64,000 bases of DNA, taken from positions 8,571,288 through 8,635,287 of the forward strand of contig JAHRHZ010000002.1 in assembly GCA_024137785.1 (NCBI GenBank), written 5' to 3'. A model generated the notes under the pieces. The model was not told where the DNA came from. It did not search any database and was given only the letters and a program-made list of their open reading frames with translations. Of the stretch, positions 3,603 through 59,139 are shown in pieces (position 1 is the first letter of the stretch; each line of letters starts with the position of its first letter). The position numbers and the translations under genes are program-made. The stretch comes from Ginglymostoma cirratum. Its lineage: Eukaryota.

Positions 3603-5012
3603 ATGGGAAAGGCAACAGAAACGAATGAAACGCCCAGTAACCGAACAGCCTCGCTTGAAACTCAAAGAGGGAGTTCTTATCGAACGGCCGAAATAATCTT
3701 CATTTCGCTTGTGACAGGATCTTTGAGTTTGATAACCCTCGTTGGGAACGTTCTGGTCATTATTTCCATCAAAATAAACAGGCAATTGCAAACTGTTAAC
3801 AACTACTTCATTTTCAGCCAAGCCTGCGCTGATGTTACAGTTGGTGTACCTATGAATCTATTCACCATTCACGCTCTCCTTGGCTACTGGCTTCTGGGTT
3901 CAGTGGTATGTGATTTATGGCTTGCTGTCGATTACAGTGTCAGTAATGCCTCTTTCATGAATCTCCTGATCAGCAGCTTTGACCGCTACTTCTGTGTGAC
4001 CAAACCCCTTACCTGTCCCATGAGAAGGACAACAAAAGTTGCGAGGATGATGATTGCAGCTGTTTGGGTTATCTCATTCATTCTCTGGGTTCCTGCCATT
4101 CTCTTCTGGCAGTTCATCATAGGGGAGCGGACAGTCACTGAGGGAGAGTGTTATTTACAGTTCTTCTCCAATCCTGCTGTCACTTTCGGGACTTCAATAG
4201 CTGCCTTCTATCTTCCCGTCACTGTTATGGTGATATTGTACGTGCAGATATTACGCGCAAGCAGAAGTCGAACAATAAAGGATAAAAAAAGAGCCTGAAT
4301 ACAGGTAGGAACCAATTACTTTAAGTGTACAGGTGGGCAAGATACTGAAATCGAATCAGAACCACATATCAAATGCTTCTGATAAGTTTCCACAAGTGAA
4401 TATGCAAAATGGCATTATAACTCATGAAATAATCATTGGTCATTGTGATGAAGAGGAGAAGGAGTTCTTGAGTGAGTCAACTTCTTCCATCACGGTCCCA
4501 TCAAACAAAACGGTGGAAGGCTGTTTCCATGAGAAAGGCAACGTCTTCACTATGATAGAAAATTGCAAACTCTCTTATATACAGATGGTTAATAAATCCC
4601 AAAACAATAATGACCGTGGAACAAAGCGAGGAATCATTGTAGATTTTAGAAACAATAACGGGAAGGGCAGAAAGATCAGAGAAAGATCAGAGAATATCAT
4701 AAAACGAGTAACACAATTCATACCACCTCTGAGAAGAGAAAGGTCTCTGTAACCCGAGAACAGAAAGTAACTAGGACTATTCTGGCCATTATCCTGGCAT
4801 TTGTCATAACTTGGAGCCCATGCAGTGTCATGATGCTTATTAGGACGTTCTGTTCCATTTATATTCCAAGCACAGTCTGGAATATCGGATACTGGATATT
4901 TTACATCAACAGCACCATCAACACAGCCTGTTATGCACTCTGTAATGCTACTTCCAAGAAAACTTTCGAACATCTCTTGTGCCAGTACAAGAACATTGGC
5001 GCAACGAGGTAA
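3603..5012 (+). pseudogene. Muscarinic acetylcholine receptor M2-like pseudogene (single coding exon, two frameshifts)
   Basis: ATG 3603; TM1-TM5 M2-like ([50 protein letters not shown]). +1 frameshift in the A-run at 4284-4290 gives a stop at 4296-4298. ICL3 continues in the 4333 frame; a second shift at ~4700-4725 restores TM6-TM7 ([31 protein letters not shown]) and the M2-type tail [10 protein letters not shown]. Further lesions: L2.46Q, a one-codon deletion in TM2, P7.50T, Y6.51C. Confidence 0.93.
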
Positions 5013-5069
5013 AGAAAGAAAAGCCCCTATCTATCATGCCTCAAATAACTCGAACAATGTATACCAACC

Positions 5070-5615
5070 AACACATTTGACATAATTCTGCATTTGTCTA
5101 TCCTGCTTTAGAAGTATGTTGTGAAACTTGAAAGGATTCAGAAAAGATTTAAAAGAATGTTGCCAGGGCTGGGAAGGTGAACTATAGGGAGATGCTGAAT
5201 AGACTGGGACTGTTTTCCCTAGAATGTCAGAGGCCCAGTGTGACCTTATGGAAGTTTTCAAAATTACAAGGGGTACAGATAATCTGAATAGTCAAGGTCT
5301 TTTCCTCAAGGTCGGGGAGTTCAAGATTAGAAGGCATAGGTGTAAGGTGAGAGGGGAAATATGTAAAAGGGACTTAAAGGGCAACATTTTCATGGAGAGG
5401 CTTTTGCATATATGGAATGATCTGCCAGAGGAAGTGGTGTAGGTTGGCACAATAACAACACTTAAAAGGCACCTGGTTGGATATATTAAATAGGAAGGGT
5501 TTGGAGGAATATGGGCTAAATGCTAACAAATGGGTTTGGACTGACTGAGAATAACTGGTCGACACGGAAAATTTGGACTGAAGGGTCTGTTTCCATGCTG
5601 GATATTTCTATGACA
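5070..5615 (+). mobile_element. CR1 LINE 3' fragment
   Basis: ORF 5224-5442 (DLMEVFKI...RHRCKVRGE...IWNDLPEEVV) is a CR1 ORF2 C-terminus; followed by the CR1 3' UTR GGACTGAAGGGTCTGTTTCCATGCTG. Confidence 0.85.
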
Positions 5616-5702
5616 CAAAATGTCACGAGCACTCTATATAAAGTAATGATGGTCACTTTCAAATATATATCTAAAACTATCTTTATGTGATATGTTTATT
5701 AT

Positions 5703-6290: not shown

Positions 6291-8669
6291 TATTAGACTC
6301 AGTTAGACATTGTCACTTGTCATTTTGGAAACACACTTTAGTTTCATTCAATTGAAGCGTAATGATATTATATATACATAGTTTGCTGATGACTTACGAC
6401 TTAACTAGGAGGTGAACTTTCCCAATATCTAATTTGTGCAAATATATCAATTAAACATATGTTGTGAGGTTTGTTCACTATTTCCAACATTATCTAATAA
6501 AAATAGTTAACAAGTAGCTGAATCCTCATATAAAGTGAACAGGATAGGGTGGGCAGCAATTGGCCCAGTTGGGCAAATAATGTGCTTGTGTGGGATTGTA
6601 GCCAAATATAATCAATTTGAACCTTTCCGTACTTTTGGATGAGGTGAACTAGAGGTCGGTCTTCATGCTGTCCTTATGATTAAATATCATGAACATGCCT
6701 CACTGCTGAATGAATAACAGACAAGGGCCTGTGCTTAGGAGAGCACCAAGCGCAAAATAATTTGACATACTTCTCTAAATAATGCAATGCCTGTCATGCT
6801 TCCAGCGGACCTAGCTTTTTTATCAGGTTCACTTTAGTTGGTCAGATACTAAATTATTCATTGTTGTGAAAATAAAAGTTTCCAGAAATGGAACACTTAT
6901 GTTTTTTTTTTCAAGGCACACATATTTCATTTGAAGACTGAAGAACTCAGTCATGTAACTCAGGCTGATACGAAGGCAACAAGTTCATGTATCTCGTACT
7001 TCTATGATCTGTGTCAGAAATGACCATGAATTAGAAAGGATAAAGCCATGACTTCAGTGTTGACGGATCACATTTGCTTGGTTGGAGGGCTTGCCTTCCC
7101 CAACCTCCACCCCCCACTGATTTTCTTTCCAGTTGGGTTCAGTGTCATCCCTAAGGTGTGCAGCAGGAGAACTAGGTCAAAGATTGATCTTTCTGACTTT
7201 GACAGTTATCTTCTCCATTCCTGCGGTTTCTGCAAACTGGAAAGATCAAGGCAAATCAGTGCAGAATGAATTCTGTGCAATGCATTGTATACCCTTCAAT
7301 TTGAAAACACGTTTCTCGGACACAGTTGGTGCAGCATTCCTCGTGCAATTTCATGTTCGTCGGGTAAGGCCAGAACCTTTAGGAGCGAACAATAGTCAAA
7401 TCCCAAATCGGTGACATGAAGTCATGAACCATAAAATGACCCTGATGTTCTAGCATCTGAAAAGGGTAAGATTCCTCCTCTATCAGATGCTGAATTGCCA
7501 AATGAACGTGTTAACTTTTCAACTGATTCGCAATTTCCAAGCATTGGTGTGCACATTTCAATTAGCCTGATATGTTCTGCTCTGACTTCATCCTGTCCTT
7601 CACCAGAGGAAGTGCACATCATTATCAAAGTCATCAATGTGTCAAATCATGTCGCAGACTCGGTATTTTGTTCCTCATTGGCCCCGGGGAGAAAAAATCA
7701 ACAATTTGCATCTGCGTTATGCATTCAATGTGGTCCTAAATGACTAAGCAGGAACAATTACGAACAGATTGCTCAGCAAAACTGGGCAATGGGGAAAATG
7801 ACATTGGTGCCATGTAAGGAGAGGAGAGTTGTGACAGGGAGCATGTAGTTTGATGCAATTTATTCTGAACTCCTCTAAGGCAAAGGGAGGTGGGTAAATT
7901 GTACAAGAAAGGACCATCTGGGTCGTAATCACAAGAAGTAGTCTTGTTATCTTCCAGAAGCCAAAAACATAGGCTGGAAAAGATGGAAAGACCAACAATA
8001 TCAAGGCATTCATATCTGTCTATACAAAGAGAGATCATGTCAGTTTGCCAAATCGCTCTGCAGCCCCATTAGAACATACCATAACTAACTCTTCACACGC
8101 ATGGAACAGACATGTCAGAAAAAAAAAATGGAGGCGGGTCTAGGAGAAATTTTCAGGGTAAACATTTAGTGTCCGATGTGGTAAAAAAAAAATATTGAAG
8201 TTGTAATAACAGTCTTAATTAGAATTCCAATTTATGGGATCAAAGATGAGTTTATACCATTTCACATTACTGGGGTTCATTCTTTCCATCCCTGCTTTGT
8301 TTTTTTCCGCTCTCTCTTGTTCTCACTAGGTGTATGAAACATCGTCTTCTGCTTTTTCCACTAATCCAGGGCAAATAACACAAATATACCCATCTGTCTT
8401 GCTTATCCCAGATATGTCCCTTGCATTCTGTGTCCCTTGGTTTACTCCCTTTTCTCCCATCTCTTCATTTATCTCCAACAGTCACTCTCGTTCCTCTTAT
8501 ATAAACCAAAGCCTGGTCTTTCATCTCCTTCTGTCCCACCGCCCAGGGTACCAAATACGTCATTGCAGTTGAAGCACTGATTGTCTTTTATTTCTCCCAC
8601 GTGAGCAATTATATTCCCTGATCACAATGTTGTCTCCACTCCATTAGAGAGATCAAATATGGATTGCAA

Positions 8670-9251
8670 GATAACAAGGTGTGGGGCTGGATGAACACAG
8701 CAGGCCAAGCAGCATCATAAGAGCAGGAAAGCTTGACGTTTCGGGCCTAGACCCATCATCAGAAAAAANNNNNNNNNNNNNNNNNNNNNNNNNNNNNNNN
8801 NNNNNNNNNNNNNNNNNNNNNNNNNNNNNNNNNNNNNNNNNNNNNNNNNNNNNNNNNNNNNNNNNNNNNNNNNNNNNNNNNNNNNNNNNNNNNNNNNNNN
8901 NNNNNNNNNNNNNNNNNNNNNNNNNNNNNNNNNNNNNNNNNNNNNNNNNNNNNNNNNNNNNNNNNNNNNNNNNNNNNNNNNNNNNNNNNNNNNNNNNNNN
9001 NNNNNNNNNNNNNNNNNNNNNNNNNNNNNNNNNNNNNNNNNNNNNNNNNNNNNNNNNNNNNNNNNNNNNNNNNNNNNNNNNNNNNNNNNNNNNNNNNNNN
9101 NNNNNNNNNNNNNNNNNNNNNNNNNNNNNNNNNNNNNNNNNNNNNNNNNNNNNNNNNNNNNNNNNNNNTATGATGCTGCTTGGCCTGCTGTGTTCATCCA
9201 GCCCCACACCTTGTTATCTAGGATTCTCCAGCATCTGCAGTACTTTTTATC
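8670..9251. mobile_element. Penelope-derived foldback element with hammerhead-like core and 17-bp target-site duplication
   Basis: Arms 8670-8768 and 9169-9217 are inverted copies; TCAAATATGGATTGCAA lies at both 8653-8669 and 9252-9268; minus-strand CTGATGA-TGGGTCTAGGCCC-GAAACGTC at 8735-8762. Confidence 0.8.
8769..9168. other. Assembly gap (400 N)
   Basis: Run of N at the centre of an inverted-repeat element. Confidence 1.
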
Positions 9252-11659
9252 TCAAATATGGATTGCAATATCATTTTGGTGAACAAGTCCATTCAGTCCT
9301 CAATCTTGATCCTCAGTCCAGTTGCTTTGCCATGTTGTTCCTAACTCTAAGCTCTCTGCTTTCAATCTCCTACATTATTGCATTTTTAAGCTCAAAGGAG
9401 CATACCATTCCTTCTGTTGTTGTTGATGATAATTAAAACTAGCATGACTCGGTTTACAAACTTTGGGCCATAAGTACTGCATCCATTCTCTTGGCAGACT
9501 ATTCAGGTATTGAAGGATGGTTATATACAGCTGCTCAGAGTGAAGAGATGTGCGTTGGTTTTTGGGGAGGGGATTGTCTCATGAGGTACTTGTCTGTGAG
9601 ATTGTCTACAATCCCGGAGTCCACTTTTTTGATGAATCTGGGAATAGCTGGGTGTAATTTCTGAGGTGCTATCCAGTGGGTGGTGTCAATTGTAAATAGA
9701 TAGACCCCAGTATTAATCATTGGGTCATCCCAATAATCGTCACGAACTTAATTGAAGTTAGCACAGTTGATTGGATGGCTGGTTTGCAATAAAGAGCAAT
9801 GCTGACAGTATAATTCCTGCAGGTTGCAATGAGGGCAATGAAGAGTCAAACACATTTCTGTGGATTTGAATTCATGTGTAGGTCAAACCAGAAAATGACA
9901 GCAGTTTATTTGCTAAAGGACATACATGAACCAGATGGGTTTTTCCCACAATTGGCAATGGTTTCATGGTCACCATTAGATTATTTATTTTAGATATTTT
10001 TGTATGTTTAATTCAAAATCACCTTCAGTTATGGGAGCATTCAGACATTAGTCCCCAGAACATTACGTGAATATACAGATTTCTTTTTTTTCCCTATTGC
10101 ATTGGTATTAATATCTTGAAATGGCTCATGTAACATAGCCCTTGTCTCTGCATTATTTCTGGAAGTATTTTCGTGCTTTCTTCATTAAGACAGACGCAAA
10201 CTGCTGGATTGGTTTCTTGGGCATGTCCTTACACTCCATTATAAGTTCTCCTGGCTCTGTCTGCAGTTGAAACACATTTGCTTTTGCTGATTTTGTTTTT
10301 TTTTACTTAAAGCAGATTTTAGAGTCCATTTTTATGTTTGTTGCGAACCTTTCCGTTTTGAACCTTTTAGTCTGTCATCATTTGAGATTGCTAATGTCCC
10401 AATACTCCTCGGGCAGAAGTTTGTTTTTGTTAATTAAATACTTTTTTCTGATCTGAAGCAATCCGTTATTTATATCTTTAGCCATAATTGGAACACATTC
10501 CTTTTAGGGATTTTACGCATTATGGAATTGCAATTTTTTTTATTGTTAGTTGTGTATTAGCTACTTATATGCTAACCTTTGTCAATCTGCAATCTGCAAT
10601 TGCATTTTTCTTATCCAGCATTGCCAAACTTGCCCTCTGATCATTGTAGCTTACTTTGTTTAAATTTAGGATTCTGGCTTCTGATTTTAAACTTAATGTA
10701 ACATTTTGTCACATTATGATCATTCTTTCCTAAGTTTTTTTGCAGTAAAGTTATCAGCTGACCATTTTTTAATTTTATAAGCGCAATCTAAAGTCTCCCT
10801 TGATCGTTCCCCAAGGTATAACCCTAGAAAAGTATTTCACTTGCATTTTAGAATTTGCCCCCCACAAACAGCATTACTATTAATTATGTTGACCTGATTT
10901 ATATATCAATTGAAATATTCCATGATTATTGTATCAACCTGTTACAAGCTCCTCTAATTTACAAAATGCAATTTACTTTATCACAATTGTATGTTTTTCT
11001 TTAATTAACTGAGCTAACCCACAAACATTTTCCAGCTTCCTGTCAATCCTGGCTGTCACTGATACAGATATTCAAGTCCAACCTTGCAGTTTCTTTTAGC
11101 CACACCTGTGTAATATCTACCATATCATGCTTGTGAATTGTTATTTGCAATGACAATTCGTGTCATTATTGACACGGATTCCTTAATTCAGTTTTGTTTT
11201 ACTGTCTCTATAAACTCTCACCCTATCTGTTGACATATGCTTCAGTTTTCAATCATTGCATTCCTTACTATATTCTGATCATTGTTTTACAGTTACCTTA
11301 ATCTATTGCATTTTCCTTCACTTTAACTTGCAGAAATGTACCCGTGTGATCTCTTATTCCCCGTATGCAGTTTAAAGGTTTTGTGTCTCCAAGTTCGACA
11401 ACTTACTCAGAAGACTGATTCCAGCAATATTTAGTAAAACCCATCTCAACACTACAGTTCTTTTTTCTCCAATATTATTTCTAACGCATCACAAACTAGA
11501 AATCAGTACTCGTACACCAGCCCATGAACCATATATTAACAGGTCTAAACTTATTCTCAAAAGCTAATTTGTGTGTAGTTCAGATAATGCACCAAAGATT
11601 GCCTCATTCAGACTTCCTTTTTAGATCAGTGGTAGGTTCTCATAGTTCTTATGAAAAGC

Positions 11660-11760: not shown

Positions 11761-11886
11761 TGTTAATTTTAATTCCGTGATGAAAGCAATAACATTTTAA
11801 CTTCTGGTCATACACTTTAAAAAAACTTATCTCGGGAATATTGAAGCAATAATTTCCAAGCTCCATTTTCCTTCTCTCTCTTGCAG

Positions 11887-12790
11887 TCAATTTACTGGCG
11901 ATTGTCATCCTATGATGGAGAAAGTGCGGTCTCCCTACATGCACCACTTACTACCTGGTGGCCTTGGCAGCAGCAGATCTGCTGGTCGTCTTCTCTTCTG
12001 TCATATTGTCTCAGCTCATGTCTTATTTTTCTCAGTACGTTTTCTGGAAATTGCTCCTCTGTGCAATGATATACTTATCCTTCGTTATGTAGGTACTGAA
12101 TGTTCTGTCTGGTTTGTTGTTACTTTCTCATTTGATCGATTTGTGGCCATTTGTTGCCAGAAGTTGAAAACAAAATATTGCACTGGCAAAACTGCAATTT
12201 TGGTTCTATCAATTACATTCATTCTGATATGTTTAAAATTTTCCCCTTCTACTTCATTGTTGAACTTAGAGAGATCATTGATGGTGTTCCTTGGTTCTGT
12301 AAGGAAAGGACAAGCTATTACACAGATCCTACATGGGTGACATTTAACAGGCTTGATAAGATTTTCACACCATTGATCCCATATGTTTTAATTCTGTTAG
12401 TCAGTGTGCTCACAGTCAGATACATTTTAGTGATCAGTCAGATCCAAAAGCGACTAAGGAGTCAATGTACTGGAAGAAACTGCATTGACACAGAGATTGA
12501 CAGCAGAAGAAATTCTTCAATTCTATTCTTCACCATATCTGGCAGTTTCATTCTCCTTTGGTTTTTATTTCTTATAGACTTGTTATGTTGTAGCATTACA
12601 GAAATTATTCCTGAAAATTATGAAGATTACTTGAACACCTTTGAAGACGTTGGAGTCATGTCGGTGGATTTAAGTTGCTGCACACATACATTTATTTGTG
12701 GTGCCACTCAGTCCAAGTTCAGGGGACAGTTCAAGAGTGCTGTGAAGCATTTGTGTATATCAATTGTTCATTTAATTTACAAGAGCAGGG
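11887..12790 (+). pseudogene. GPR139/GPR142-like class A GPCR pseudogene, large second coding exon
   Basis: Polypyrimidine tract plus AG at 11885-11886, then (V)NLLAIVIL*WRKCGLPTCTTYYLVALAAADLLVV with TGA at 11913-11915. After a frameshift: ECSVWFVVTFSFDRFVAICCQKLKTKYCTGKTA. After a second frameshift: PWFC, FTPLIPYVLILLVSVLTVRYIL, RRNSSILFFTISGSFILLW, LSCCTHTFICGATQSKFR. Exon 1 was not located. Confidence 0.88.
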
Positions 12791-16021: not shown

Positions 16022-16177
16022 GAGATAGTAGGAACTGCTGATGCTGGAGAATCTGCGATAACAAGGTGTAGAGCTGGATGAACACAGAAGGCCAAGCAAC
16101 ATCAGAAGGGCAGGAAAGCTGATGTTTTGGGATGAGACCCTTTAAGCTGTGTTCATCCAGCTCTACACCTTGTTATC
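16022..16177. mobile_element. Penelope-derived foldback element
   Basis: GATAACAAGGTGTAGAGCTGGATGAACACAG and its reverse complement at ~16147-16177; flanking duplication ACTGATCAGGACA (16009-16021) / ACTGATCAAGACA (16178-16190). Confidence 0.75.
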
Positions 16178-17329
16178 ACTGATCAAGACAAATCACTTCC
16201 CAGAGAGCCCCAGAATTCACAGGAAATAATTGTTCATTTTGACTTTCTGCTGAAGCCGAATAATGGCAGAAGATGCCCCACCCGTCCCATAATTTCAACA
16301 TTGATTATTAATTCAAAATGTTACACTTGTTCTGCCTCACTGGAAAGTCAGGTCCCTCAAGGCCTACACAGGGAGTATTTACAGGGGATGCCCTACAATA
16401 TAGGTGAATGGAGGTTGATGACCCCAGGTCTGGGAAAGGTGAGAGGAGGGGGAGCTCTGCACCGTAACCATGTTTTGGGGATATGGAGGTGGCTTTCCTC
16501 TGCAGAAGTTCATGTCTGTGCTGCGAACGAATCTCCAGTTAGCCTATGAGGGAGAGTAAGAGATTGGACATTTTTACTTTATTATGCGTGAAGGGGTGGA
16601 TAGATCTAAGGTGTGGAAATCAATTTGATGAACCTGATCAGAAATATTTTTCATTTAGGTGTACGCGTTAGGTGGATTAGTCATGTTAAATTGCCTTGTA
16701 GTATCCAGGATATGTAAGCTTGGTGGATTAACCACAGACAAACGCAGTGTAACATGCATCGAGTTGGGGTTTGGATCTGAATGGGATATACTTCAGAGGG
16801 TCGAGGCAGACTGAATGGGCCAAAGGGCCTCTATCTGCACTGGAGGGTTTTTATAATTCATTGAAAGAGTAAGACCTATTAGTAATTTCTATGGTAATCA
16901 ATATGTGCGGCCAGAATGTGTTGTTATCATTCTTAATAAATTTATTTTCATGGGAGAAAGGGATGCTTTGATTTAATAGTGAAGTATTCTAGATTGGCTG
17001 AATGGCCTACTCCTCCTCTTATTTCTAATGGTTTTATTCATACATTACTATCACATGAAAAGTGTCTGAAATATGGATAAAATTGAAATAATAAGAAAGG
17101 AAGTATTAAGGACAAAAGCTGGCAAAGTAGCAACTTTGTCAGTCATGGGTAAAATGTGTCAGTTAAAGTTAGGAGAAAAGAAAGCAAAGAATAATGTTAA
17201 GGGAAATGATATCTTAAAATCCTGAACTCCAGAGAGTTAGGGAAACCACATAAAACGGTTTCACTAAAGAAAAGCTTAAAGCAAACAAAAACGAAATAGG
17301 ATCAGAGATGTTTCTGATTCCAATGAAGG

Positions 17330-20124: not shown

Positions 20125-20250
20125 ATTGCAGGAACTGAAGATGTTGCAGTCAGAGATAACAAAGTGTGGAGCTGGAGAAACACAGCAGGGCGGGCAGCAT
20201 CAGAGGAAGAGGAAGGCTGACGTTTTGGGTCGGATCCCTTCTTCAGAAAT
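20125..20250 (-). mobile_element. Penelope-derived element, single arm
   Basis: GAGATAACAAAGTGTGGAGCTGGAGAAACACAGCAGG...GACGTTTTGGGTCGGATCCCTTCTTCAG, same family as 8670. Confidence 0.7.
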
Positions 20251-37903: not shown

Positions 37904-37949
37904 GAGGTAACAAGCATTCATTCATGAATGCACCCTCCAAAGGGCTTTA

Positions 37950-41240: not shown

Positions 41241-41473
41241 ACATATATTGCAGATGTGGTTGTCCCGGGTCACCCAATATAGCTGCAGAACAGCACAAGC
41301 CTCAACAGCTCAGTTGCGTCTTGTGTATTTCTGTGTAAATTTGAAATTTCATGCTCTGTTCCCATGATGTATCCCTCCCTGTGGTTTTTGTGTTTTGGAG
41401 ATAATATACTTTTGCCTCTGCCCATCTCTATGGGGAATATTAGACTGATTGCCACTCTCTTTTGGCATTTTAG

Positions 41474-42073: not shown

Positions 42074-42347
42074 GAACCCAAACAATGCAGATGCTGATTG
42101 CCTGTGAACTGAGAGATGAAGGGACGAGGCTTGAGTTCTACCAGAGGGGTTGGGACGGACACGATTGTATCAGCTTTGACAAAGATCATAGAGTATGGAT
42201 GACGCCAGACTCATGGGGAGAGAGCATCTAAAAAGTAGATGGAGCAGAATAAGTCCAACAATCAGCAGTGGATGATTTACCTGGAGGAGGGATGTGTCAA
42301 GTGGCTGAGGAAATACTTGACGTATGGACAGAGAGAACTGAGAGTCG
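42074..42347 (+). pseudogene. MHC class I-like heavy chain pseudogene, alpha2 exon
   Basis: Acceptor TTTTCAG and donor GTGAGT (42348), 274 nt, phase 1. TQTMQMLIACEL...GWDGHDCISFDKDHRVW..., stop/frameshift at ~42229, then EQNKSNNQQWMIYLEEGCVKWLRKYLTYGQREL; both disulfide cysteines are present. Confidence 0.92.
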
Positions 42348-42789: not shown

Positions 42790-42929
42790 TTGCCCCGGCA
42801 TGTTCTTGTCCTGTCTGAATAATTCTAACTAGCTGCTCTGTCTTGGCACTGGGTTTTGCCTTCAAGCCATCAAAATGACTCTTTGGAGAATTAGAGTTTC
42901 TCAGGAACCAATGTCTCCTGGATTGTTGC
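42790..42929 (+). pseudogene. MHC class I-like heavy chain pseudogene, 5' half of alpha3 (Ig C1) exon
   Basis: Acceptor CCTTCAG (AG 42788-42789); VAP...LSCLNNSN*LLCLGTGFCLQAIKMTLWR...MSPGLL resembles L.C..TGFYP..I.VTW.R; truncated by CR1 sequence. Confidence 0.75.
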
Positions 42930-43350
42930 ATTAGGCCAAATAGGGTAAACTTGGATATTAGTGTGTGGCATTATTCATTGCAGTACAGCAATAACAACAG
43001 CGTGACAGAGTTCAAAATGGAGAAAACATTGGCAAATGAAGTTTCCACACAGACAAATGTGAAGCAGTTCAATGTGGCATAGGGATTGTATGAGTGTAGG
43101 TTTATCAAAGGCATAAAGTGATCTCAATGTACAGAGGCACTGATCGAAATTCAGGTCATAGAGAAAGTAAAGCCAATTATTGTACCTTATTTCAGGAGGG
43201 TTAGAATTGTAAATCATGGGGAGGGATGGGGGTTATGTTCAACCTGTACAGACCTTTGGTCAAACCACATTTGGATCACTGATGAAATTCTGGTTGCTGT
43301 ATTATGAAAAAATACTTGCAGGTAAGAGAAGGTGTGCAGAAACGAAGTTT
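42930..43350 (+). mobile_element. Old CR1 fragment truncating the alpha3 exon
   Basis: AAACATTGGCAAATGAAGTTT..CAAATGTGAAG (WQMKF..KCE) and CTGTACAGACCTTTGGTCAAACCACATTTGG (LYRPLVKPHL). Confidence 0.65.
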
Positions 43351-43649
43351 TGATAACAGTACTACAAAGAAAACATTTCACCTTTTGTTGGGAAGTGCAT
43401 AAGTAGAGGCCATCAATATAACATCATCAACAAGAAATTCAATATGCAATTCAGGAAGACCTAGCTTATTGCAAGTGTTGCACGAATGTGGAAAGTCCTC
43501 AACGCAGACAGTTGTTAAAGTGAAACTGTAGACAATATGTGGTATGTAGGACCACCAGCAATAACTGGTTGCGCCAAATGATTTGTTTCTATGCCATTGT
43601 GTTCTATAATCCTCATTGACTGAGTCTCTAGATATCATTTTCTCTCTCT

Positions 43650-44365
43650 GTCTTGTTTCTAAATACGTTTATGGGGTACAAGTTGCTGGCTAGGACACTT
43701 TTATTGCCCATTCCTAGAAGCCCTTCAGGAAGTGGTGGTGAGCTGCCTTCTTAAACAGCAGCACTCCATTTGGTGCAGGGCAGTTCCAGAATTTGAAGCC
43801 ACGAAGCTGACAGAATGTCGATTTTTTTTTCATGTCAGTGGCTTTGAGGGCTATGTGCAAATGGTGGTGCTTCCATCTGTCTCCTGCCTTTTCCATGATA
43901 GATGATAGTTGTTGTGGGTTTGGCAAGTGTTTTTTGAGGAGCTTTAGTCGTATTCTGTAGTTCACCTTGTAGATAATACACACAGCTTCTCTGGAGCTTT
44001 GGTAGTCAAGGTAGTGGTTAATTGTGGATGTCGCCCTAATCAAGCGTGCGGCTTTGTCCTGGAAGGTGTTAAGATTCATGACTGTTGTTGGAGCTGCACA
44101 CATCCAGGGAAGTTGAGAGTACTCCATTGCACTCTTGACTTGGACTGTGAACAAGCTTCGGAGAGATAGAGGTGAGTTATTCACTGTAGGATTCCAATAC
44201 TGCAATCTGTTCTTCCAGCCATGTTATTTATATTGAAATGCAGTACAGTTTCTGGTTAATGGTGTGCCTAAGGATAACTGGGGATTCAGTGATGAGAACA
44301 CTTTTCAATGTTAAGAGGTGTTGTTCAGACTCTCTCTTATTGGAGATAGTCCTTACATGGCCATT
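43650..44365 (-). mobile_element. CR1-clade LINE RT C-terminus and 3' end (family distinct from the dominant CR1)
   Basis: ORF 43714-44205: VQVKSAMEYSQLPWMCAAPTT..LNTFQDKAARLI...FKKAAHHHFLKG. Confidence 0.7.
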
Positions 44366-44754: not shown

Positions 44755-44980
44755 ATAGCACAGTGTGGAGCTGGAGGAACACAGCAAGCCGGGGAGCATC
44801 AGAGGAGCAGGAAAGCTGAAGTTTCAGGTCGGGACTCTTCTTCAGAAAGAAAAAGACAGGAAGAATGGTCCAGACCAGAAACGTTTGCTTTCCTGCTCCT
44901 CTGATGCTGCCTGGACTGCTGTGTTCCTCCAGCTTCACACTGCGTTATCTCAGACTCCAGCATTGGCAGTTATTATTATC
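44755..44980. mobile_element. Penelope-derived foldback element (older copy)
   Basis: Inverted arms ~44755-44845 and ~44860-44948; degenerate duplication TCTATATTGGGATT / TCTACTTTGGGATT. Confidence 0.7.
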
Positions 44981-48326: not shown

Positions 48327-50797
48327 ATGCACCAGTGGATGATACATTATTACATTATTGACTTCAAAAGGTATACTGTCCTGCGCTTGCTCCTATTAGT
48401 ATTTCTGGTAAGTCTTTAAGTCCAGTTATTAATTCCACAGGCTATATTTACACGCACTAATGTTCATGACATTTTAAGCTAATAAATACATCGGTTGTAA
48501 TATTCGTTGAATGCCTTTTGTTCTTGGCATCATGTTGAAACAATTTCATTTATTTTAACGTTTAGACATCCATCCGTCCTTGTGAGCTCAAGGACTGCCA
48601 CCACATTCCGCATTCCTCCCATTGGAAGTTTTCGTCTTCAGATGAAAAGACTCTTGAAATTCTTGAAACAAAATCGGAATCAGAAATCCGATTCTGCTTG
48701 ATGCATGTAATAATTCAGAATTTTGGAGCCTGTGTGAACTAGATCACATAAAGAAACTGAAATATGTTCTTTGAAGATTCAGATTTCAGATCATCCAGCT
48801 GATGTCATGTCACATTTAATTTTCCAACTGGTATCTTGTCAGAATAGAGGTGGATTATGATACAAAATACGTTGATGTAACTCGTTCGTTTTGGATGGTC
48901 ACCTCTCCAGTCATTTTTTTTTTGTCCATCACTGAATGATATGCAGCATGTCACGGGTGAAGAAATATCTCAGTCAGTAATACAGATAACTTTTCATGCA
49001 TTCCCTGTCCCATTTTTTGAACCTGCCATGCTATGCTTAATATTTGCTGCATGATGCAGGCCTTTACACTGGAACATGGAGGAAACTGTTAAATTGCAAC
49101 AATGTTAAACATAATTTTTTTAAAAAGTGCTATTCGTCACAGGTACTCCCATATATCAATTTCCTTTTGGTTAAGTTTTTTAAAAAATTATTAAATACTA
49201 ATCATTGTCCCCACCAACCATCATCGTCACAGACCCAATCTAGGGTTGGTTTTAGGATAAGACTCATCCCACTTTGTCAAAATAACGGCAATGTAACGTC
49301 AGAAATCTGCTGAGGTCGGATGAAATCATCTGCTGTTCTTTTTTTATGTCAAAACAAGTCGATTCTGGAAATGCAAACCCTGCCACTAAAGGCAGTCAGA
49401 ACGTTGACTAGTATGCTCTTTTTGGAAAATCTTCGCCACACCTGCGGCTGCATTTTCTTCTTAAAACCACAAGTCGGGGTGATTGCAAGCTCCTGGTCAC
49501 AAGTGGTGTCTCCGCCTATATTGACCATCAGCTGGAGAATCTTACTTCTCAAGCCTGAGTTTGAGGGCTGTCATCTCCTTTGTTACAGTAACCCTCTGGT
49601 CATGTCATCTGATCACTTGACACAGCCTTCTTCCCCATGTCATTGGGGAGGCACCATATTCCATCATCTGTGCACCCACGATCCAATAAAGACTTTATTA
49701 ATGGTTTATCAGCAACATCCTAGATAGGATCACTCCCTGATTGTTTTGTCCTTACATTTAATGCTAAGGATATATGGTAATTTTGGAACTCTTTTTTTTG
49801 AAAAATTGCTGTTGGCAGTTATAAATTGTGTAAGCTTCGCTGCCATTCAACAAAGCACAAAGGATACAGGTCAGAATATGGACATATATATATACTAACG
49901 TGTTTATTTTTCTTTGTCTATTTCATTAGTCAACCAATGTTCATGCGTGCTTTTTCTGTTGTGATGTGGTAAGTAGGTTGGCAACAGGCTCTTTGTCTGT
50001 CATCATTGATCCAATATAGTGTAATGTACGGTCTGCTTGCAATCATGTTTTGTCGAGTCTGGACACAGGTAGAAACATAAGGACCTTTTCTTTCATGACA
50101 GTTTTCTTGAAACCGTTGATGAGGGTGTACATGACAGACACCTGTCGCAGATTATTCATAACCATGTTGAGTTAGTCTTCTGACTGTGTAAATAGAGTAC
50201 CACATCATTAACAAACAGGCATTACTTGACCAGAATATATAACTTTCTGCCTTTTTCGCTTGAAGAGTTTTTCATCTAATCATTCCTCCAGTTACATTCC
50301 TTTCCTATCAACATTGTTAGTGTAAGCCAGTAACATCAAGGTAAATAAACCATACAAAATATAGGCAAAGTAAAATATCATTGAATATCAAAGAACTTTT
50401 TTTCATTAATAAATAATTATTAAATGATTAGTAAAATAGCCTAAATTAGGATTTCCTAATCTATATCTCTTCTCCACAGTCAATCTAGTGACAACTGTGA
50501 TCCTATCACGTGAAAAGTGTAGCAAATCCAAATGTTTTACTTCTACTAGTATCCATAGTAGGAAAGGATTTACTAATTGTTATCATCAACATGATGATGG
50601 TGGGCATTCCAGTAGTTCATTATGTACAATGTATTACTATATAGTTTATTCCCCACATGCATCATTGATGAGGCCTTGGATTATATAGCCACAGGCTGTC
50701 CTGTCCAATTCATCATCACCTTTATCCCCATTACACAGGGAAAAATTAATCTGTGGCTCTGTGAGCAGTGAGTGTACTAGGATGTTTATTGGATATG
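48327..50797 (+). pseudogene. Second GPR139/GPR142-like pseudogene: exon 1 48327-48407, ~2.07-kb phase-1 intron, truncated exon 2 from 50480
   Basis: Exon 1 reads MHQWMIHYYIID/QKVYCPALAPISIS-G|GTAAGT with one frameshift. Acceptor CTCTTCTCCACAG (AG 50478-50479), then (V)NLVTTVILSREKCSKSKCFT / LVSIVGKDLLIVIINMM / PTCIIDEALDYIATGCPVQFIITF / TGKN*SVAL*AVSVLGCLLDM, colinear with the 11887 copy; the DRF..ICC segment is deleted. Confidence 0.78.
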
Positions 50798-51049: not shown

Positions 51050-54000
51050 AGCGCTGTGTAGGGAGCAGTGGGAGGTCCAAGCAGCGCAGAATGAGTATAA
51101 AGCTAACTGAGCTTCGGGTACACAGTAGCTGCGGACAAGTTGGATTGACGTCACATCGAAGCTGTGACCTGATTGCTAGTAGGAAATTTGCACTAAATTT
51201 GAAAGAAAAATACGGCAAAGAACTATGCTGTCAAAATGATTATCCACGTAGAGATGGCTGACCAAGTAATGTGCTGTAGCTGTATGATGTGAGACCGGCA
51301 ATTCCAACAGGGAGCTCCAGTGACCACACCTGCAGCGAGTGGAACTTGAGGAACTTCGGCTCAGAGTTGATGACCTGAAATCTGAGCTTCAAGCACTGCA
51401 GCATATCCGGGAGGTGGAGGATTTTTTTTTCAGGAGGTGTTTACACCTAGTAGATTAATAACTTTAAATTCAGTCAGAGATCATGGAGAGCAGTGTATTT
51501 AATGCAAGTAAGGCGGTTCGGGGCATCCTGAATTCAGGAATGGAGGAAGCTCAGAGCTTGACCATGTCGAACAGGTATGAGGTACTTTCTCCCAGTGAGC
51601 ATGAGGTAAAGGGCTGTGAGGAAGATGAGCCAGCTGACTACTGCATCGGAGTACAGAAGGCCATTCACTGGGTGGAACAGAAAGACAAGTGATAGTTGGA
51701 GGGGATTCTCTAATTCGGGCGATTGATCGCATCCTTTGCGAGCAGGACCAAGAGTCCCGCATATTGTGTTGCCGGTCCAGTTGCGGGACATCTCTGATCT
51801 GCTTGAAAGGATATTGAATCACGAGGTTGAACAAGCAACATAGGCAAGGCTAGGAAGGAGAACCTGTTTAGGGATTATCAAGCACTCGGAAAGAAATTAA
51901 GGAACAGGACCTCAATTGTTAACAGTCTCTGGAGTACTACCCGGGCCATGTGCAAATTGGCTTAGGGATAAGAAAATTCGGGAACTAAATACGTTGCTAA
52001 AGGATTGGTTGTGGGAAAGAGGAGTTCCATTTCATTCCATGGTACATTTACATCTCTTATCGAACAGCGGGGATCCGTACCTTTGGGACAGTCGGACCTT
52101 TGGGACAGTGGAACCAGTGTTCTAGAGAAAAGCATACATAGGGTGGTTGCTAGGACTTTAAACGAGTGAATTTGGGGAAAATGAAGGGGAAAACAACAGG
52201 AAGTATCGTGGTAAATATCCAGGAAAGCAGCAGGTTAACAGGACGGCTAAACTACATCAAAGACTATGAAAGAAATTTTTAAAAAATGAAAAAAAAACTC
52301 AAGAGATATTATTGATGGAGATGTTAGAATTCAGAAAAACAAATTACAAAAAACAAGCAAAATGGACTTTTGTAGCATTCCGAAAGAAAATGGTAGATGT
52401 GTTAAGGGCAGAAATTACGTGAATGTATATGATTTAGTAGTCATTACGGAGAGATGGTTGCAGGATGGTAACAACTGGGAATTAAATATCTACGGGCATC
52501 AGACTATTCAGAAGGGAAGACAGGAAGGTAAGGGGGAATGGTGTAGGTCTGATATTTAAGGATGACTTCAGGGCTGTAGTGAGAGATGATATAGGTTATA
52601 TGCAGAATAAGTTTTAATCAGCTTGGTTAGAAATTAAAAATTCTAAGAAGAAAAAGTCACTGATAGACGTAGTGTTTAGGCCACAAATTGCTAACATCAC
52701 AATAGGGCGAGTAACTAACAAAGAAATAACTCCAGTCTGCAAAAATGGTACGGCAATTATCATCGGGACTTTAATCTGCATGTCAACTGGTTGAACCAGC
52801 TCAGTCAAGGCAGCCTTGGGGAACAGCTCACTGAATGTATCGATGGCAGCTTTCTTGAATAGTATGTAATGGAACTGACGAGGGACCAAACTATCCTAGA
52901 TCTGGTCCTGTGTAATGAGGCAGGAATAATTAATGATCTTATGGTTAGAGATCCTCTTAGAAGGAGTGAGCGCACTTTTGTTGAGTTTAAAACATAAATG
53001 GAAAGTGAGAAGTTAAAAGCCAATACCAGTGTCCCGCGCTTAAACAGATGAGACTGCAGTAGGATGAGGGTATAATTCGCTAAAGTAAACTGGAAGCAAA
53101 AACTTTATGGTAGGAAAGTTGAGGAACTGGAGGATTTTCAAACGAATTTTTCAAAGTGTTCAGCAAAAGTATATACCAGATAAAAGGAAGGGCTATAGAA
53201 AGAGGGGTAATCAGCCATGGATGTCTGTGGAAATAAGGGAGGCTATCAAATCGAAAGATAAGGCACACAAAGTGGTGAAACCCAGTTGGAAGCTGGAAGA
53301 TAGGGAAAACTTTAAATGTCAACATAAGGCCACAAAAAAAACTATAAAGAAAAGGAATATATATAAAATGAGAGTAAACTAGCTCAAAATATAAAAACTG
53401 ATAGCAAAAGTTTCCACAAACACATAAAATGAAAAAGAGTGTCGAAGGCAAGGATTGGCCCTTTAGAGGATGGGAACAGGAATTAATAATGTGAAATGAG
53501 GAAATAGCTGAGGCATTGAACAGGTATTTTGTGTCTGTCTTCACAGAGGAGGACATGAATAAAATTCCAGTAATTGATGTCAAAGAGACTAAGGTAGGTG
53601 AGGGCCTAAAAACGATCACTATAATGAAAGAGATAGTGCTGGGCAAGCTAAATGTGTATTGGTCTCCTGCCCCTGATGGAATGCATTCCAGAGTACCTAA
53701 AGATGTGGCGGGAGAAATGGCAAATATGCTCGTGGTCATTTTCCAAAGTTTGCTGGACTCTGGAGCAGTTCCAGCAGATTAGAGAGCAGCAAATGTGTTA
53801 ATGAAAGGAAGTAGACAAAAATTAAGGATTGTAGGCCAGTTAGCTTAACTTCTAAAGGGGGAAAATGATTGAATCTACCATCAAGGGCGGGGGGAAAAGC
53901 AATACATCGATGTAGAAATTGTCGCATTGGGCAGATGCTGCAGGGGTTCATGAAGGGCAGTTCATGTTTAACTCATTTCCTGGAATTTATGAACGCGGTC

Positions 54001-55480
54001 AGCAATGGGGACCCAGTAGATGTGGTGTATCTAGATTTCCAAAAGGCATTTGGTAAAGTTCTGTACAAAAAGATGCTGCATAAGATGAAGGTGCAAGGCG
54101 TTACAAGCAATGCATTCACATGGATAGAGGATTGGTTAACTAACAGGAAGCAAAGAATGGGGATAACTGGTTGGTAATCAGTGTCTAGTGGCGTGCCTCA
54201 GTGATCAGTTTTGGAACCACATCTGTTTTCAATTTACACAGATGCTTTGGAGTTGGGGACAACGGGTAAAGTGTGAAATTTGAGATGACACTAAGATAAA
54301 TTGTGGAACAAAGCGTGCAGAAGTTAACTGGGGTGGCATGGTGGCTCAGTGGTTAACTCTGCTGCCTCCGAGCTCCAGGGACACAGGTTCGATTTCATTC
54401 TTGGGTGACTGTCTGTGTGGAGTTTGCACGTTCTCCCAGTGACTGTGTGGCTTTCCTCTGGATGTTCTGGTTTCCTCCTACAATCCAAAGATATGCAGGC
54501 TGGGTAGATTGGTTATGTTAAATTGCCCATAGTGTTCAGGGGAGTGGGATTGTTGGGCTGAAGGGCCTGTTTCCATACTGTAAGTGTTCTATGAGAAGGG
54601 TCTGAAAGTTTGCACAGGTATGTAAATCATTTAAGTGAATGGGCAACAGTTTGGGAGGCAGCATATGGTGTTGATAAACGTGAAGTCATCCATGTTTTTA
54701 TGAATGACAGTAAAACGTATTATTATTTGAATGGTAAAAAAAATGCAGCATGCTGCTGTGCAGGGGGACCTATATGTCCTTGTTTATGAATCGCAGAAAG
54801 TTGGTTTGCATGTGCAAGAGGCAATTAAGAAGGCAAATCGAGTTTTGTCCTTCATTGCTGGAGGGATTGAGATTAAAAGGAGGTGAGTTATGCTCCAGCT
54901 GTATAGTGTGCTGCTGTGGTTACACCTGGAGCACTGCATGCAGTTTTGGCTTCCTGACTTGTGAAAGGATCTACTGGCCCTGGAGGCGGTGCAGAGGAGA
55001 TTGAATATATTGAATCCAGAGTTTAAGGATTAGTTTATGAGGGGACACTGAGTAGACTGGAATTGCATTCATTGTAATTTAGAAGAATGAATGAGGATTT
55101 TATAGAAACATATAAAACTATGAAGGGAATAGATAAAATGGAAGCCGGAAGGATGATGAAAGGTAGGTAGATGAAACTACACCAAGAGGGCATAGCCTCA
55201 AATTAGGGAGAGCAAATTTAAGATTGAATTGAGGAGGAAATTCTTCACCCCAAGGGTTATGAAGCTATGGAATTCCCTGCGCAGTGAAGTAGCTGAATCT
55301 GCCTCATTGAATGCCGTTAAAGCTAAAATAGATTTTTTTTGGCCAGCAAATGATTTGAAGGTTGCAGTGAGAGAGTGCATAAGTGGAGCTGAGGCCATGA
55401 AAAGATCAGCTATGATTTATTGAATGGCAGAGTGGGCTCGAAGGCCAGATGGCCTACTCCTGTTCCTGGTTCTTATGTAC
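51050..55480 (+). mobile_element. Old full-length CR1 LINE, heavily decayed
   Basis: ORF1 relics MADQVMCCSCMM (51253), DHTCS, LEELRLRVDDLKSELQAL, SNRYEVLS, GDSLIR; ORF2 relics YDLVVITERWL, NRYFVSVFTEED, DFQKAFGKV, RKFFTPRVMKLWNSL; 3' UTR at ~55420-55480. Confidence 0.88.
54327..54592 (+). mobile_element. HE1-like SINE nested in CR1
   Basis: A box GTGGCTCAGTGG, B box GGTTCGATTTC, GTGTGGAGTTTGCACGTTCTCC, and a CR1-type tail. Confidence 0.85.
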
Positions 55481-56619: not shown

Positions 56620-57565
56620 TAGCAGAGGTTTACCAGGATGTTGCTGGAGCCAGAAAGTCTTAGTTTTAAACACATGGATTGGAGTTATTTTCCTTGGAGC
56701 TTAGGAGACTGAGCAGAACATGGTTAAGATATATACAATTATAAGGGTCAAGGATAGAGCCAAAGATTCATGCAGCACGCAAATAGGCCCTTCAGTCCAA
56801 CTGGTACATGTTGAATAATTTTCCCAAACTAAACTAAACTAACCTGATTAGCCTGTTTTTTTTTTCTAATGTCACCCTGAACGTTTCCTATTCATGTACT
56901 TATCCAAATGTCTTTGACATGTTGTAATTATACCTGCATCTGCCAATTCCTCTGAGAATTCAATCCAAAAATGAACTGCCCTTCATCCCCTTTTAAATCA
57001 TTCTCTTCTCACCTTAAAATTATGTTCTTTCGTTTTGAAATCCTCCACACTCGGGGAAAGGCCTTCGACATTCACCTAATCTCTGCCTCTCATGATGTTA
57101 TAAATCTCCATAAAATCACACGTCAACGTCCTGCACTACAGTGAAAACTGTCCCAGCCTAACCAGCCTCTCCTGGGAAGGAACATTTCCCTTGGCTGAGG
57201 GGAACAAAAATGATCAGAAAGTTGTTGGTAAGGAGCAGGAGGCGTACGGATGACATGAGGGACATTTTTTTTTCTTTCTTCAGCCTGAGGGTGGTATGAA
57301 ATTGAAACTCACTGTGTGTATGGTGGTAGAATCAGAAGCCCTCGTGACTTTTAAGACATGTTTACGTGTGCACTTATGATACCAAGACATAGAAAGCTAC
57401 GCACCAATGCTGAAAAATCCTGGCCTGCTGTGTTCCAGCCTTTATCTCTGATTCCAGCATCCGCAGTTCTTGCTATCTCTTAGAAACGTAAGGCGGTATT
57501 TTTGGAATAACATAGACTCAGTGGACTGACGCACCCTTTTATGTGCTGTAGGCCTCTATGACTGT
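56620..57565. mobile_element. Nested old CR1 3' fragments (a + copy split by a - copy) with a short Penelope-type piece at ~57418-57480
   Basis: AGAGGTTTACCAGGATGTTGC on +, reversed 3' UTR from ~56765, and the + copy resumes at ~57175. Confidence 0.55.
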
Positions 57566-57744
57566 AACTCTGAGACCTCTTGCAAACGTTTTGAAGTTTG
57601 TGGAACATACTGTTTCCTTTACATCCTAGCTGGCAGCACTTCAGTGAGCCACAAGTTTCCGATGGGTTTGGATTTTTAATTCTAAAGTGTTCTTTCCTTC
57701 TTTGCCAGGCCTCGTCAGTGCCAGGTGTACATCACAATGAATTG

Positions 57745-59139
57745 ATGGTGAAATTGTTTGTGATGAATGAGACTCTCAGTCACCGAACAGACATGCTTGC
57801 TTCTGAAAGAGACAGTTTTTATCGAACAGCCGAAATGGTCACCATGGTGATTGTGACAGCATCTTTAAGTTTGGTAACCATTATTGGAAACTTTCTGGTC
57901 CTGCTCTCTGTGAAAGTAAACAGACATTTACGAACTATTAACAACTATTTTATTTGCAGCTTAGCTTGCGCTGATTTGATTCTTGGGGTATTTTCAATGA
58001 ATCTATATGCCATATACACTGTGTCTGGGTATTGGCCTTTGAGTCCATTGATGTGTGAGTTCTGGCTTGCTGTAGATCACATTGCTACTACTGCGTCTGG
58101 AATGAATCTCCTTCTCATCAGCTTCGACCGTTATTTCTGCGTAACAAGACCCCTCAGTTACCCTTTGAAAAGAACAAATAAAATGGCAGTGATGATGATT
58201 GCAGCAGCGTGGGTGCTGTCCGTTGTCGTATGGTGTCCCGTTATTCTCACCTGGCAGTTCATGGCAAGCGGCTGGGCAGTTAACGAGGGGGAGTGTTATG
58301 CACAATTCTTCTCAGATCCAGTCGTTGCATTTGTCATTTCAATGGCGGTCTTCTTTCTCCCCGTTGCCATCATGGTGGGTTTATATGTGCGCATATCTCA
58401 AGACAGCAAGAATCGAATGAAGGAGAATAAAACAATACATGAAACAAGCAAAGGCACTACTACTCCCAGTCGAGCGAGAGGCAAAGTCGTGGACCCGAAA
58501 TGTAACAAAACCTTAAACGCTTCTAATGGGTTGATGCACATCGAAAAGCAAAACGGTAACATACCTGGTGAAATAACAATCATGAATAAGCTTTCAGATA
58601 ATTTAACTTCTCCCAGCCTGATCTCCACAAACCAAGTTCGGAAGGAGTTAATGAAAGAGGTAACTGTGCTCCCTGTTGTACAATGCACGACAGGCAAAGA
58701 TGAACTGTTTGGCTTCAAGGTAATGAATTTGCCTCAAAAATATGACCACCACGATCACATGTCAGGCTTAAAGCAAGACAAAAGCGGCAAGAATGGGGGT
58801 GACAAACGTATCACAGCCGTTCATGGCATCACTGAAATGATCAAGACCACTGCTAAGAAGAAGAGGATAACTGTAACGCGAGAAAAGACGGTGACTAGGA
58901 CTATCCTGGCTATTCTGCTGGCATTTATCATCACTTGGATACCATACAGTTTCATGATGCTCACTTACACGTTCTGTCCAATCTGTGTCCCCAGCACAGC
59001 CTGGACAATTGGGTATTGGATCTGTTACATCAACAGCACCATCAATCCGGCCTGCTATGCCCTGTGTAATCAAACCTTCAAGAAAACTTTCAAGAATCTT
59101 CTTCTCTGTCAGTGCAAGCATATTGGAGCATTGAGATAG
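57745..59139 (+). CDS. Muscarinic acetylcholine receptor M2-like GPCR, intact 464 aa, divergent paralog
   Basis: Open single-exon 7TM ORF. Start ATG 57745 lies just after a polypyrimidine/AG acceptor (57707-57708). Motifs: NET sequon, GNFLV, NNYFICSLACADL, D3.32, [14 protein letters not shown], long ICL3, [10 protein letters not shown] (M2/M4 VTIL Gi motif), TWIPY, C-x-x-C in ECL3, IGYWICYINSTINPACY, tail LLCQCKHIGALR. The symbol is left empty because orthology to CHRM2 is doubtful. Confidence 0.95.
   Translation: MVKLFVMNETLSHRTDMLASERDSFYRTAEMVTMVIVTASLSLVTIIGNFLVLLSVKVNRHLRTINNYFICSLACADLILGVFSMNLYAIYTVSGYWPLSPLMCEFWLAVDHIATTASGMNLLLISFDRYFCVTRPLSYPLKRTNKMAVMMIAAAWVLSVVVWCPVILTWQFMASGWAVNEGECYAQFFSDPVVAFVISMAVFFLPVAIMVGLYVRISQDSKNRMKENKTIHETSKGTTTPSRARGKVVDPKCNKTLNASNGLMHIEKQNGNIPGEITIMNKLSDNLTSPSLISTNQVRKELMKEVTVLPVVQCTTGKDELFGFKVMNLPQKYDHHDHMSGLKQDKSGKNGGDKRITAVHGITEMIKTTAKKKRITVTREKTVTRTILAILLAFIITWIPYSFMMLTYTFCPICVPSTAWTIGYWICYINSTINPACYALCNQTFKKTFKNLLLCQCKHIGALR

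Follow-up and report, generated by a model that had tools for sequence, protein, structure and literature searches.

Why should one short stretch of a shark chromosome carry, interleaved, relatives of the muscarinic acetylcholine receptor M2 (gene CHRM2), relatives of the receptor GPR139 and a piece of a major histocompatibility complex (MHC) class I gene? The stretch, hereafter the window, comprises 64,000 nucleotides of the nurse shark Ginglymostoma cirratum (NCBI GenBank assembly GCA_024137785.1, contig JAHRHZ010000002.1, positions 8,571,288 to 8,635,287 of the forward strand); positions given below are counted from its first letter. A preliminary description had recognised five host loci of these three families and proposed that G protein-coupled receptors (GPCRs) and class I-like genes had been amplified here together. 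Instead, we consider it probable, at roughly 0.7, that the window is a transposon-rich chromosome stretch crossing part of a tandem cluster of CHRM2-derived genes, and that the mixture of families is inherited synteny.

Host loci of the window

The window is vertebrate DNA with a G+C content of ~40% and a single gap of 400 N. A Pfam scan of 149 open reading frames (ORFs) of at least 75 amino acids (aa) on both strands detected 7tm_1, MHC_I and domains of long interspersed nuclear elements (LINEs) only, and no other Pfam gene family was found in these ORFs. The five host loci were each located by homology, all on the + strand and in the order described before:

3600-5009, + strand: M2-like (CHRM2-derived) pseudogene, matched in pieces by tblastn in frames 3, 1 and 3 against shark M2-type proteins
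11871-12789, + strand: main coding exon of a GPR139-like orphan GPCR pseudogene, matched by the family hidden Markov model (HMM) in three frames (4.7e-77, 9e-33 and 2.8e-13)
42070-42340, + strand: MHC class I alpha2 exon remnant with an internal frameshift, matched by Pfam MHC_I and by the class I chain of PDB 6lup (1e-11)
50473-50723, + strand: second GPR139-like relic, transmembrane helices (TM) 1 to 3 only, matched by three collinear HMM pieces in three frames (profile positions 53-135)
57763-59139, + strand: intact coding sequence (CDS) of an M2-like receptor, best PDB match human M2 (1.2e-144), Pfam 7tm_1 (1.1e-58)

Together they amount to ~5.5 kb of the 64 kb, and LINE and foldback repeats occupy much of the remainder. 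That four of the five are dead was borne out as well, as each of these carries frameshifts or stops or survives as a relic only.

An M2-like receptor with an altered acetylcholine pocket

The live gene lies in a frame which is open from 57595 to 59136 and is closed by a stop codon at 59137-59139, corresponding to 458-514 open codons. Searched against the PDB, its protein matched human M2 first and over the full length, and M4, M1, M3 and M5 scored lower. Alignment to P0001 of Stegostoma, an annotated protein, yielded 74% identity and was gap-free even across the third intracellular loop (ICL3). With CHRM2 the gene shares the single coding exon, the long ICL3, D3.32, the DRY motif, the W6.48 toggle, NPxxY and the same C-terminal ending, all of which are retained. 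It differs from CHRM2 in being one of several tandem paralogues, where bony vertebrates have one or two copies, and in the replacement of eight of the 16 orthosteric residues, including Y3.33 and N6.52 (Y3.33H, S3.36T, N3.37T, T5.39A, T5.42I, A5.43S, A5.46V and N6.52S). The canonical acetylcholine pocket is absent from this copy, but the activation switches (DRY, NPxxY and W6.48) are present. Stegostoma P0001 is likewise altered at seven of these eight positions and has the identical residue at six. Core identity to the sawshark M2a is 72% for the live gene compared to 92% for mole-rat M2. From these residues we infer that the gene encodes an aminergic receptor of the Gi/o type that is retuned away from classical acetylcholine pharmacology.

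The exact start of the protein depends on the choice between two methionine codons, the ATG at 57763 and an alternative ATG at 57745. The frame upstream of both (57595-57762) is open, and in a sister species 10 bp are inserted after 57657. The Stegostoma protein model has 27 additional N-terminal residues; the window sequence becomes homologous to it at 57709, behind an acceptor-like cag, which suggests an upstream exon. As the ATG at 57745 is lost in the sister species, a start at 57763 or in an upstream exon appears more likely than one at 57745.

Repeated duplication of CHRM2 in galeomorph sharks

Copy numbers were obtained from a protein search with the live gene, counting the genes per species among the matches listed. 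On this basis elasmobranch species hold 2-7 M2-like genes each (Mustelus, 7; Rhincodon, 5; Cetorhinus, Hemitrygon and both Scyliorhinus species, 4 each; Chiloscyllium plagiosum and Hypanus, 3 each). In eight galeomorph species all of them, or all but one on an old scaffold, are located on a single contig, and three genes of the whale shark have consecutive NCBI accessions. The batoids Mobula and Pristis have two copies each, on different chromosomes.

Phylogenetic analysis with IQ-TREE separated all galeomorph M2-like copies from the M2 of batoids, sawshark and bony vertebrates with a support of 99 in the Shimodaira-Hasegawa-like approximate likelihood ratio test (SH-aLRT). When other muscarinic-type receptors were included as outgroups, the M2 clade was supported with 96, the galeomorph clade was nested inside it with an SH-like support of 97, and both window copies fell within the M2 clade. 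This nesting indicates that the genes descend from CHRM2 and were duplicated within the galeomorph sharks.

The two window copies belong to different subclades. The live gene forms a pair with P0001 of Stegostoma, and the copy at 3600-5009 groups with genes of the whale shark (P0028) and of the bamboo and epaulette sharks (P0085, P0090 and P0120), which are live and orthologous to it by tree placement. In the nurse shark the reading frame of this copy shifts twice, in an A7 run (4283-4289) and near 4680-4700; in addition, the copy contains a TAG near 4306, lacks 1 aa in TM2 and has NTxxY in place of NPxxY (P7.50T). Since the TAG stop and the NTxxY change do not depend on homopolymer length, the pseudogene is dead whatever the read errors. 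A tandem duplication of a block consisting of one M2-like and one GPR139-like gene was considered and rejected, as the order is M2, GPR, MHC, GPR, M2 and the M2-like copies show 70-76% DNA identity and derive from different old subclades. Downstream of both M2-like copies, 0.1 and 2.4 kb past their stops, lies a 494-bp stretch (5118-5600 and 61529-61991) with 65% identity, which may survive from the original duplication unit or from a shared 3′ untranslated region.

To describe the pockets, 60 sequences were scored at 16 orthosteric and seven activation or other conserved residues, the pocket sites including D3.32, Y3.33, S3.36, N3.37, W4.57, T5.39, T5.42, A5.43, A5.46, W6.48, Y6.51, N6.52, Y7.39, C7.42 and Y7.43. 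In bony-vertebrate M2 the pocket sites were invariant (12 of 12 sequences), and all 23 sites were identical in 11 of the 12 (the exception being Y3.51F in Alligator). One copy per elasmobranch species likewise keeps all 23 sites, for instance Cetorhinus P0007, Mustelus P0018, Chiloscyllium P0097, Pristis P0003 and Mobula P0004. The remaining paralogues each carry 1-8 pocket replacements; mapped on the tree, N6.52 was changed at least nine times, A5.46 eight times and C7.42 seven times, and derived pocket states are common to orthologues. Within the live genes D3.49, R3.50, N7.49, P7.50 and Y7.53 were never altered, and D3.32 was altered once. An altered pocket together with preserved switches fits paralogues which still signal but would do so without the classical acetylcholine site.

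The M2 duplicates of the stingrays Hemitrygon and Hypanus (P0008-P0012, P0022 and P0037) have an independent origin, with 3-4 copies. They show the convergent changes N6.52S, N3.37Y/S and A5.43G and evolved slowly overall.

Copy counts, tree and pseudogenes agree with the earlier view that both GPCR families are multi-copy in cartilaginous fishes and undergo birth and death, and site scoring across the sequences showed that the pockets of the M2-like paralogues diversified with signalling motifs intact. Lineage-specific duplicates, pseudogenes and a dead copy with live orthologues elsewhere were all found: the window pseudogene is orthologous to live P0028, P0085 and P0090, and the live window copy has a stop-bearing counterpart in the sister species, which argues for a birth-and-death family.

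Trace amine-associated receptors (TAARs) are chemoreceptors derived from aminergic GPCRs. The shark M2-like genes resemble them in tandem duplication from a neurotransmitter-type class A receptor, retention of D3.32, diversifying pockets, gain and loss by lineage and the occurrence of pseudogenes. They differ in that the parent gene is M2 and the repertoire comprises only 2-7 genes, and the resemblance lies in evolutionary mode alone.

The GPR139-like family and its linkage to the M2-like genes

The larger GPR139-like copy (11871-12789) is 59-65% identical to Cetorhinus P0121 and is inactivated, its reading frame being interrupted by a TGA near 11913 and shifted near 12020 and again near 12240. 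The 250-bp relic at 50473-50723 is composed of pieces matching profile positions 53-76 (E 3.9e-05), 77-105 (0.33) and 103-135 (0.064), and a tblastn word match covers 50479-50535. A protein search with the larger copy retrieved at least 133 clusters at 90% identity, all chondrichthyan and including Callorhinchus, compared with the 2-7 genes per species of the M2-like family; in size, the GPR139-like genes resemble the large clustered families of vertebrate chemosensory repertoires (OR, TAAR or V1R type). In Heterodontus dozens of members are distributed across many chromosomes.

A full-length member searched against the PDB had GPR139 as its nearest match (7vug and 9m42; 45 bits, E 6.8e-11), followed by the PrRP receptor (35 bits); the window fragment searched alone against the PDB gave no match. 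GPR139 is therefore the nearest solved structure, and the automatic name given by NCBI is 'probable GPR139'. Unlike GPR139 and GPR142, the shark family was found in cartilaginous fishes only. As the GPR139 match reaches only 45 bits, the family is, judged by its matches, an orphan class A family of chondrichthyans and probably no GPR139 orthologue. The term 'amino-acid receptor scaffold', used in the preliminary description, is not supported for a family so remotely similar to GPR139.

In a tree of 79 GPR139-like members, the window copy was placed in a clade of 15 rows with an SH-aLRT support of 87. The other 14 members of this clade are all located on the contig that bears the M2-like genes, in Cetorhinus, Stegostoma, Rhincodon, S. 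canicula and S. torazame. NCBI accessions of the GPR139-like genes are near-consecutive; accession order could not relate them to the M2-like genes. With 14 of 14 clade members on the M2-like chromosome in five sharks, the linkage of the M2-like genes and this GPR139-like subfamily is, according to tree and contig placement, old and conserved, one ancestral location having been kept by descent. The reported co-location of the two receptor families thus stands insofar as both share a chromosome in five other sharks; it reflects a single ancestral linkage and no recurrent pairing.

Taken together, we propose the following history for the window. In galeomorph sharks the single vertebrate M2 gene would have been duplicated repeatedly to give 2-7 genes per species, one of which would keep the canonical acetylcholine pocket while the others mostly keep Asp3.32 and the activation switches and exchange pocket residues. 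The live gene at 57763-59139 would be one such pocket-altered paralogue, and the copy at 3600-5009 would stem from a different old paralogue lineage, dead in the nurse shark and alive in whale and bamboo sharks. Both GPR139-like relics would belong to one subfamily of the large chondrichthyan-only orphan family, a subfamily presumably residing on the M2-like chromosome since before the divergence of orectolobiform, lamniform and carcharhiniform sharks. The window chromosome is probably the MHC-bearing chromosome of the nurse shark, and the class I alpha2 exon may be a decayed stray from class Ib clusters on the same chromosome. Tandem duplication, divergence, gene death and the insertion of LINEs and short interspersed nuclear elements (SINEs) would have produced the present arrangement.

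Condition of the live gene

Several observations weigh against this reading. The synteny of M2-like and GPR139-like genes is resolved to chromosome level only, and in Mustelus the GPR139-like genes listed are on other chromosomes than the M2-like genes. The adjacency of the pseudogene at 3600-5009 to the other four loci rests on the scaffold join across the gap, and the ligand shift of the live receptor is deduced from residue changes. Further points concern the state of the live gene itself and derive from a comparison with the sister species, for which contigs from four studies of one organism were aligned to the window (first 40 of 93 differences listed, reaching 58412). In the sister-species orthologue the ATG at 57745 is changed to ACG and a CGA at 57784 to TGA, which is codon 8 counted from the ATG at 57763, the four studies being concordant. 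Over the first 650 bp, window and sister species differ by 12 synonymous and 13 nonsynonymous changes, corresponding to a ratio of nonsynonymous to synonymous differences per site (pN/pS) of ~0.31. Finally, no RNA run holding the live gene was found among the indexed runs, which lack the window's own species. In the same index, searched with 31-mers of the window, none of the sequencing runs carries the window's own sequence, the best of them holding 0.21 of the sampled words at ~95.5% identity.

The loss of the start, the early stop and the pN/pS of ~0.31 suggest that the live gene may be weakly constrained or on its way out, and the gene of the sister species would be either N-terminally truncated or dead. 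Extending this to the window would mean that the 'intact' M2-like gene, too, no longer works or is being lost, its frame open only because the loss is recent, and that the window is a gene graveyard at the edge of the cluster, for which the eight lost pocket residues and the RNA search without a match would also speak. Against it stand the 458-514 open codons with DRY, NPxxY, W6.48 and D3.32 intact, the gap-free alignment through ICL3 to a Stegostoma orthologue itself annotated as a protein, and the six derived pocket residues identical between the two. Moreover, the 66 differences in 1483 bp of the live-gene region include no insertion or deletion in the sister-species CDS, and a pN/pS of 0.31 remains below neutral. 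We therefore regard such a graveyard as unlikely; by this comparison, constraint on the lineage of the live gene is real but weak.

Two further features of the sister-species data concern this gene. Just upstream of it, at 57442-57512, lies a very-high-copy repeat with a summed contig depth >60,000 in all four sister-species runs. In three of the runs short contigs skip 82 bases in the region coding for TM7 (58994-59077), the shorter side matching over 26 letters, which is probably due to cross-mapping from another M2-like paralogue.

The MHC class I relic

The alpha2 remnant consists of two pieces, 42070-42222 in frame 1 and, past the frameshift, 42248-42340 in frame 2. The two halves matched Pfam MHC_I with 9.3e-07 (29.0 bits, cut-off 28.3; profile 90-137) and 2.2e-05 (24.6 bits; profile 149-179), and both cysteines of the alpha2 disulfide are present. 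PDB 6lup, matched by the exon, is a structure which we take to be that of a shark class I molecule. Two flanking stretches were noted by eye:

~41430-41615, + strand: possible class I alpha1 remnant, pattern HxLRxF...PG..EF...Y.D in frame 3
42833-42931, + strand: possible class I alpha3 (immunoglobulin) remnant, pattern L.C...GF......W

Neither of these two stretches had a match in Pfam or the PDB. No further class I homology was found in the 64-kb window, so that it contains one relic only and no recurrent local pairing of class I and receptor genes.

All class Ib genes of elasmobranchs have been located on the MHC chromosome (Verissimo et al. 2023, PMC10751288). Given this location, the single class I exon is most simply a stray of the class Ib region on the same chromosome, and position rather than co-amplification explains it best. 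In its alpha2 best match (6lup) and in the apparent location of the window on the MHC chromosome, the locus resembles the elasmobranch class Ib regions; it differs from them in its decay to a fragment and in lying outside the clusters described.

In the mouse vomeronasal organ, H2-Mv molecules partner V2R receptors. By analogy, the three families of the window could form one co-amplified and functionally coupled repertoire of chemosensory or immune function, with class I-like molecules as partners of the GPCRs. In line with such a repertoire, both GPCR families are expanded, bear pseudogenes and share a chromosome in six sharks, the M2-like pockets diversified, and genes for odorant receptors (ORs) and TAARs are very few in sharks (PMC10116579). 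However, the class I contribution is one relic of which the alpha2 exon alone has statistical support, and its apparent position on the MHC chromosome accounts for it. A single ancestral cluster explains the linkage of the GPR139-like genes, the M2-like family is small, no RNA run holding the gene was found among the indexed runs, and the three non-M2 loci are all dead. We consider such a coupled repertoire very unlikely, and the proposed co-amplification with class I genes is not upheld by a lone decayed relic and the published location of class Ib genes. As in MHC-linked odorant receptor clusters and the mouse H2-Mv/V2R system, GPCR genes and class I-type sequence occur on one, apparently MHC-bearing, chromosome, but the shark window holds a lone dead class I exon. 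Of all features of the locus, a connection with the MHC would have been the most remarkable; the evidence does not support one.

Implications of the elasmobranch CHRM2 radiation

With the window read as part of a CHRM2-derived cluster with inherited neighbours, of greatest interest is that CHRM2 radiated in elasmobranchs and that the pockets were rebuilt. Few aminergic receptors are as conserved as M2, in which no pocket residue varies between sturgeon and mammals, yet the gene was duplicated up to seven-fold in sharks, and the pocket appears to have been rebuilt repeatedly while the signalling motifs were kept. In the library searched, the literature on GPR139, CHRM2 or muscarinic receptors in sharks described neither expansion, which is no proof of novelty. 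Cartilaginous fishes fall outside the scope of a review on the evolution of muscarinic receptors, which reports no shark expansion (PMC6298421). With strong conservation elsewhere and no shark expansion reported, the duplicated lineage represents a natural experiment in the acquisition of new ligands. Cartilaginous fishes were described as GPCR-poor in a whale-shark paper (PMC8455134), and work on shark olfaction deals only with OR, TAAR, V1R and V2R and leaves the M2-like and GPR139-like families unmentioned (PMC10116579 among others). The GPCR-poor view is qualified by the present families, which are the sharks' own expansions and are not counted by standard chemoreceptor surveys.

A wider and clearly speculative suggestion, which we hold to be quite unlikely in its full form, is that CHRM2 gave rise to a small elasmobranch family of new receptors for amines or quaternary ammonium compounds, by separate duplication in galeomorphs and stingrays, N6.52 being lost convergently. 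Possible ligands would be choline-like or methylamine compounds abundant in elasmobranchs, such as trimethylamine N-oxide (TMAO), betaine and trimethylamine, and the receptors could serve as internal sensors of osmolytes or metabolites or as chemoreceptors offsetting the tiny OR and TAAR repertoires, perhaps alongside the linked GPR139-like family.

Assembly gap and repeats

The space between the host loci holds the gap and numerous repeats, of which two features are delimited as follows:

8769-9168, no strand: assembly gap of 400 N, intergenic, inside a foldback repeat with inverted flanks
29682-33232, + strand: near-complete LINE of the esterase type with GDSL ORF1, endonuclease and reverse transcriptase (Pfam Lipase_GDSL_2, Exo_endo_phos and RVT_1)

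The flanks of the gap (8669-8719 and 9169-9219, 51 bases each) are 100% reverse-complementary, and intact foldbacks of the same repeat family are present at 16051-16183, 24920-25007, 27586-27697 and 44755-44948. The sides of the gap look like the two arms of one foldback element, arguing for continuity, and its location inside such an element explains why the assembly is broken there. No gene homology was detected within 2.7 kb of the gap, the nearest ending at 5027 and resuming at 11871, so that no reading frame crosses it. That the juxtaposition of the families is an assembly artefact, with unrelated contigs scaffolded across the 400 N between the 3600-5009 locus and the rest, or mere chance given a dispersed and ubiquitous GPR139-like family, is most improbable, since the gap flanks are arms of one element, the other four loci (11871 to 59139) lie on uninterrupted sequence, and the window GPR139-like copy belongs to the very subfamily for which linkage to M2-like genes was observed in five other species. 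In the foldback family, arms of 37-89 nucleotides (nt) enclose loops of 4-59 nt; the gap copy spans 8669-8768 and 9169-9253, and single arms are found at ~20154-20250 and 40753-40848.

At least seven LINE fragments, including fragments of reverse transcriptase recognised by self-blast, separate the host loci. The LINE at 29682-33232, itself one of these, has few frame breaks and is possibly young. Directly 3′ of the second GPR139-like relic, at 51468-55420 (+ strand), there is a decayed LINE of this type, and the missing part of the GPR139-like gene may have been lost when this LINE inserted. Finally, a repeat with 81% identity occurs at 1-458 and 43490-43963 and contains a conserved ORF without a Pfam match.

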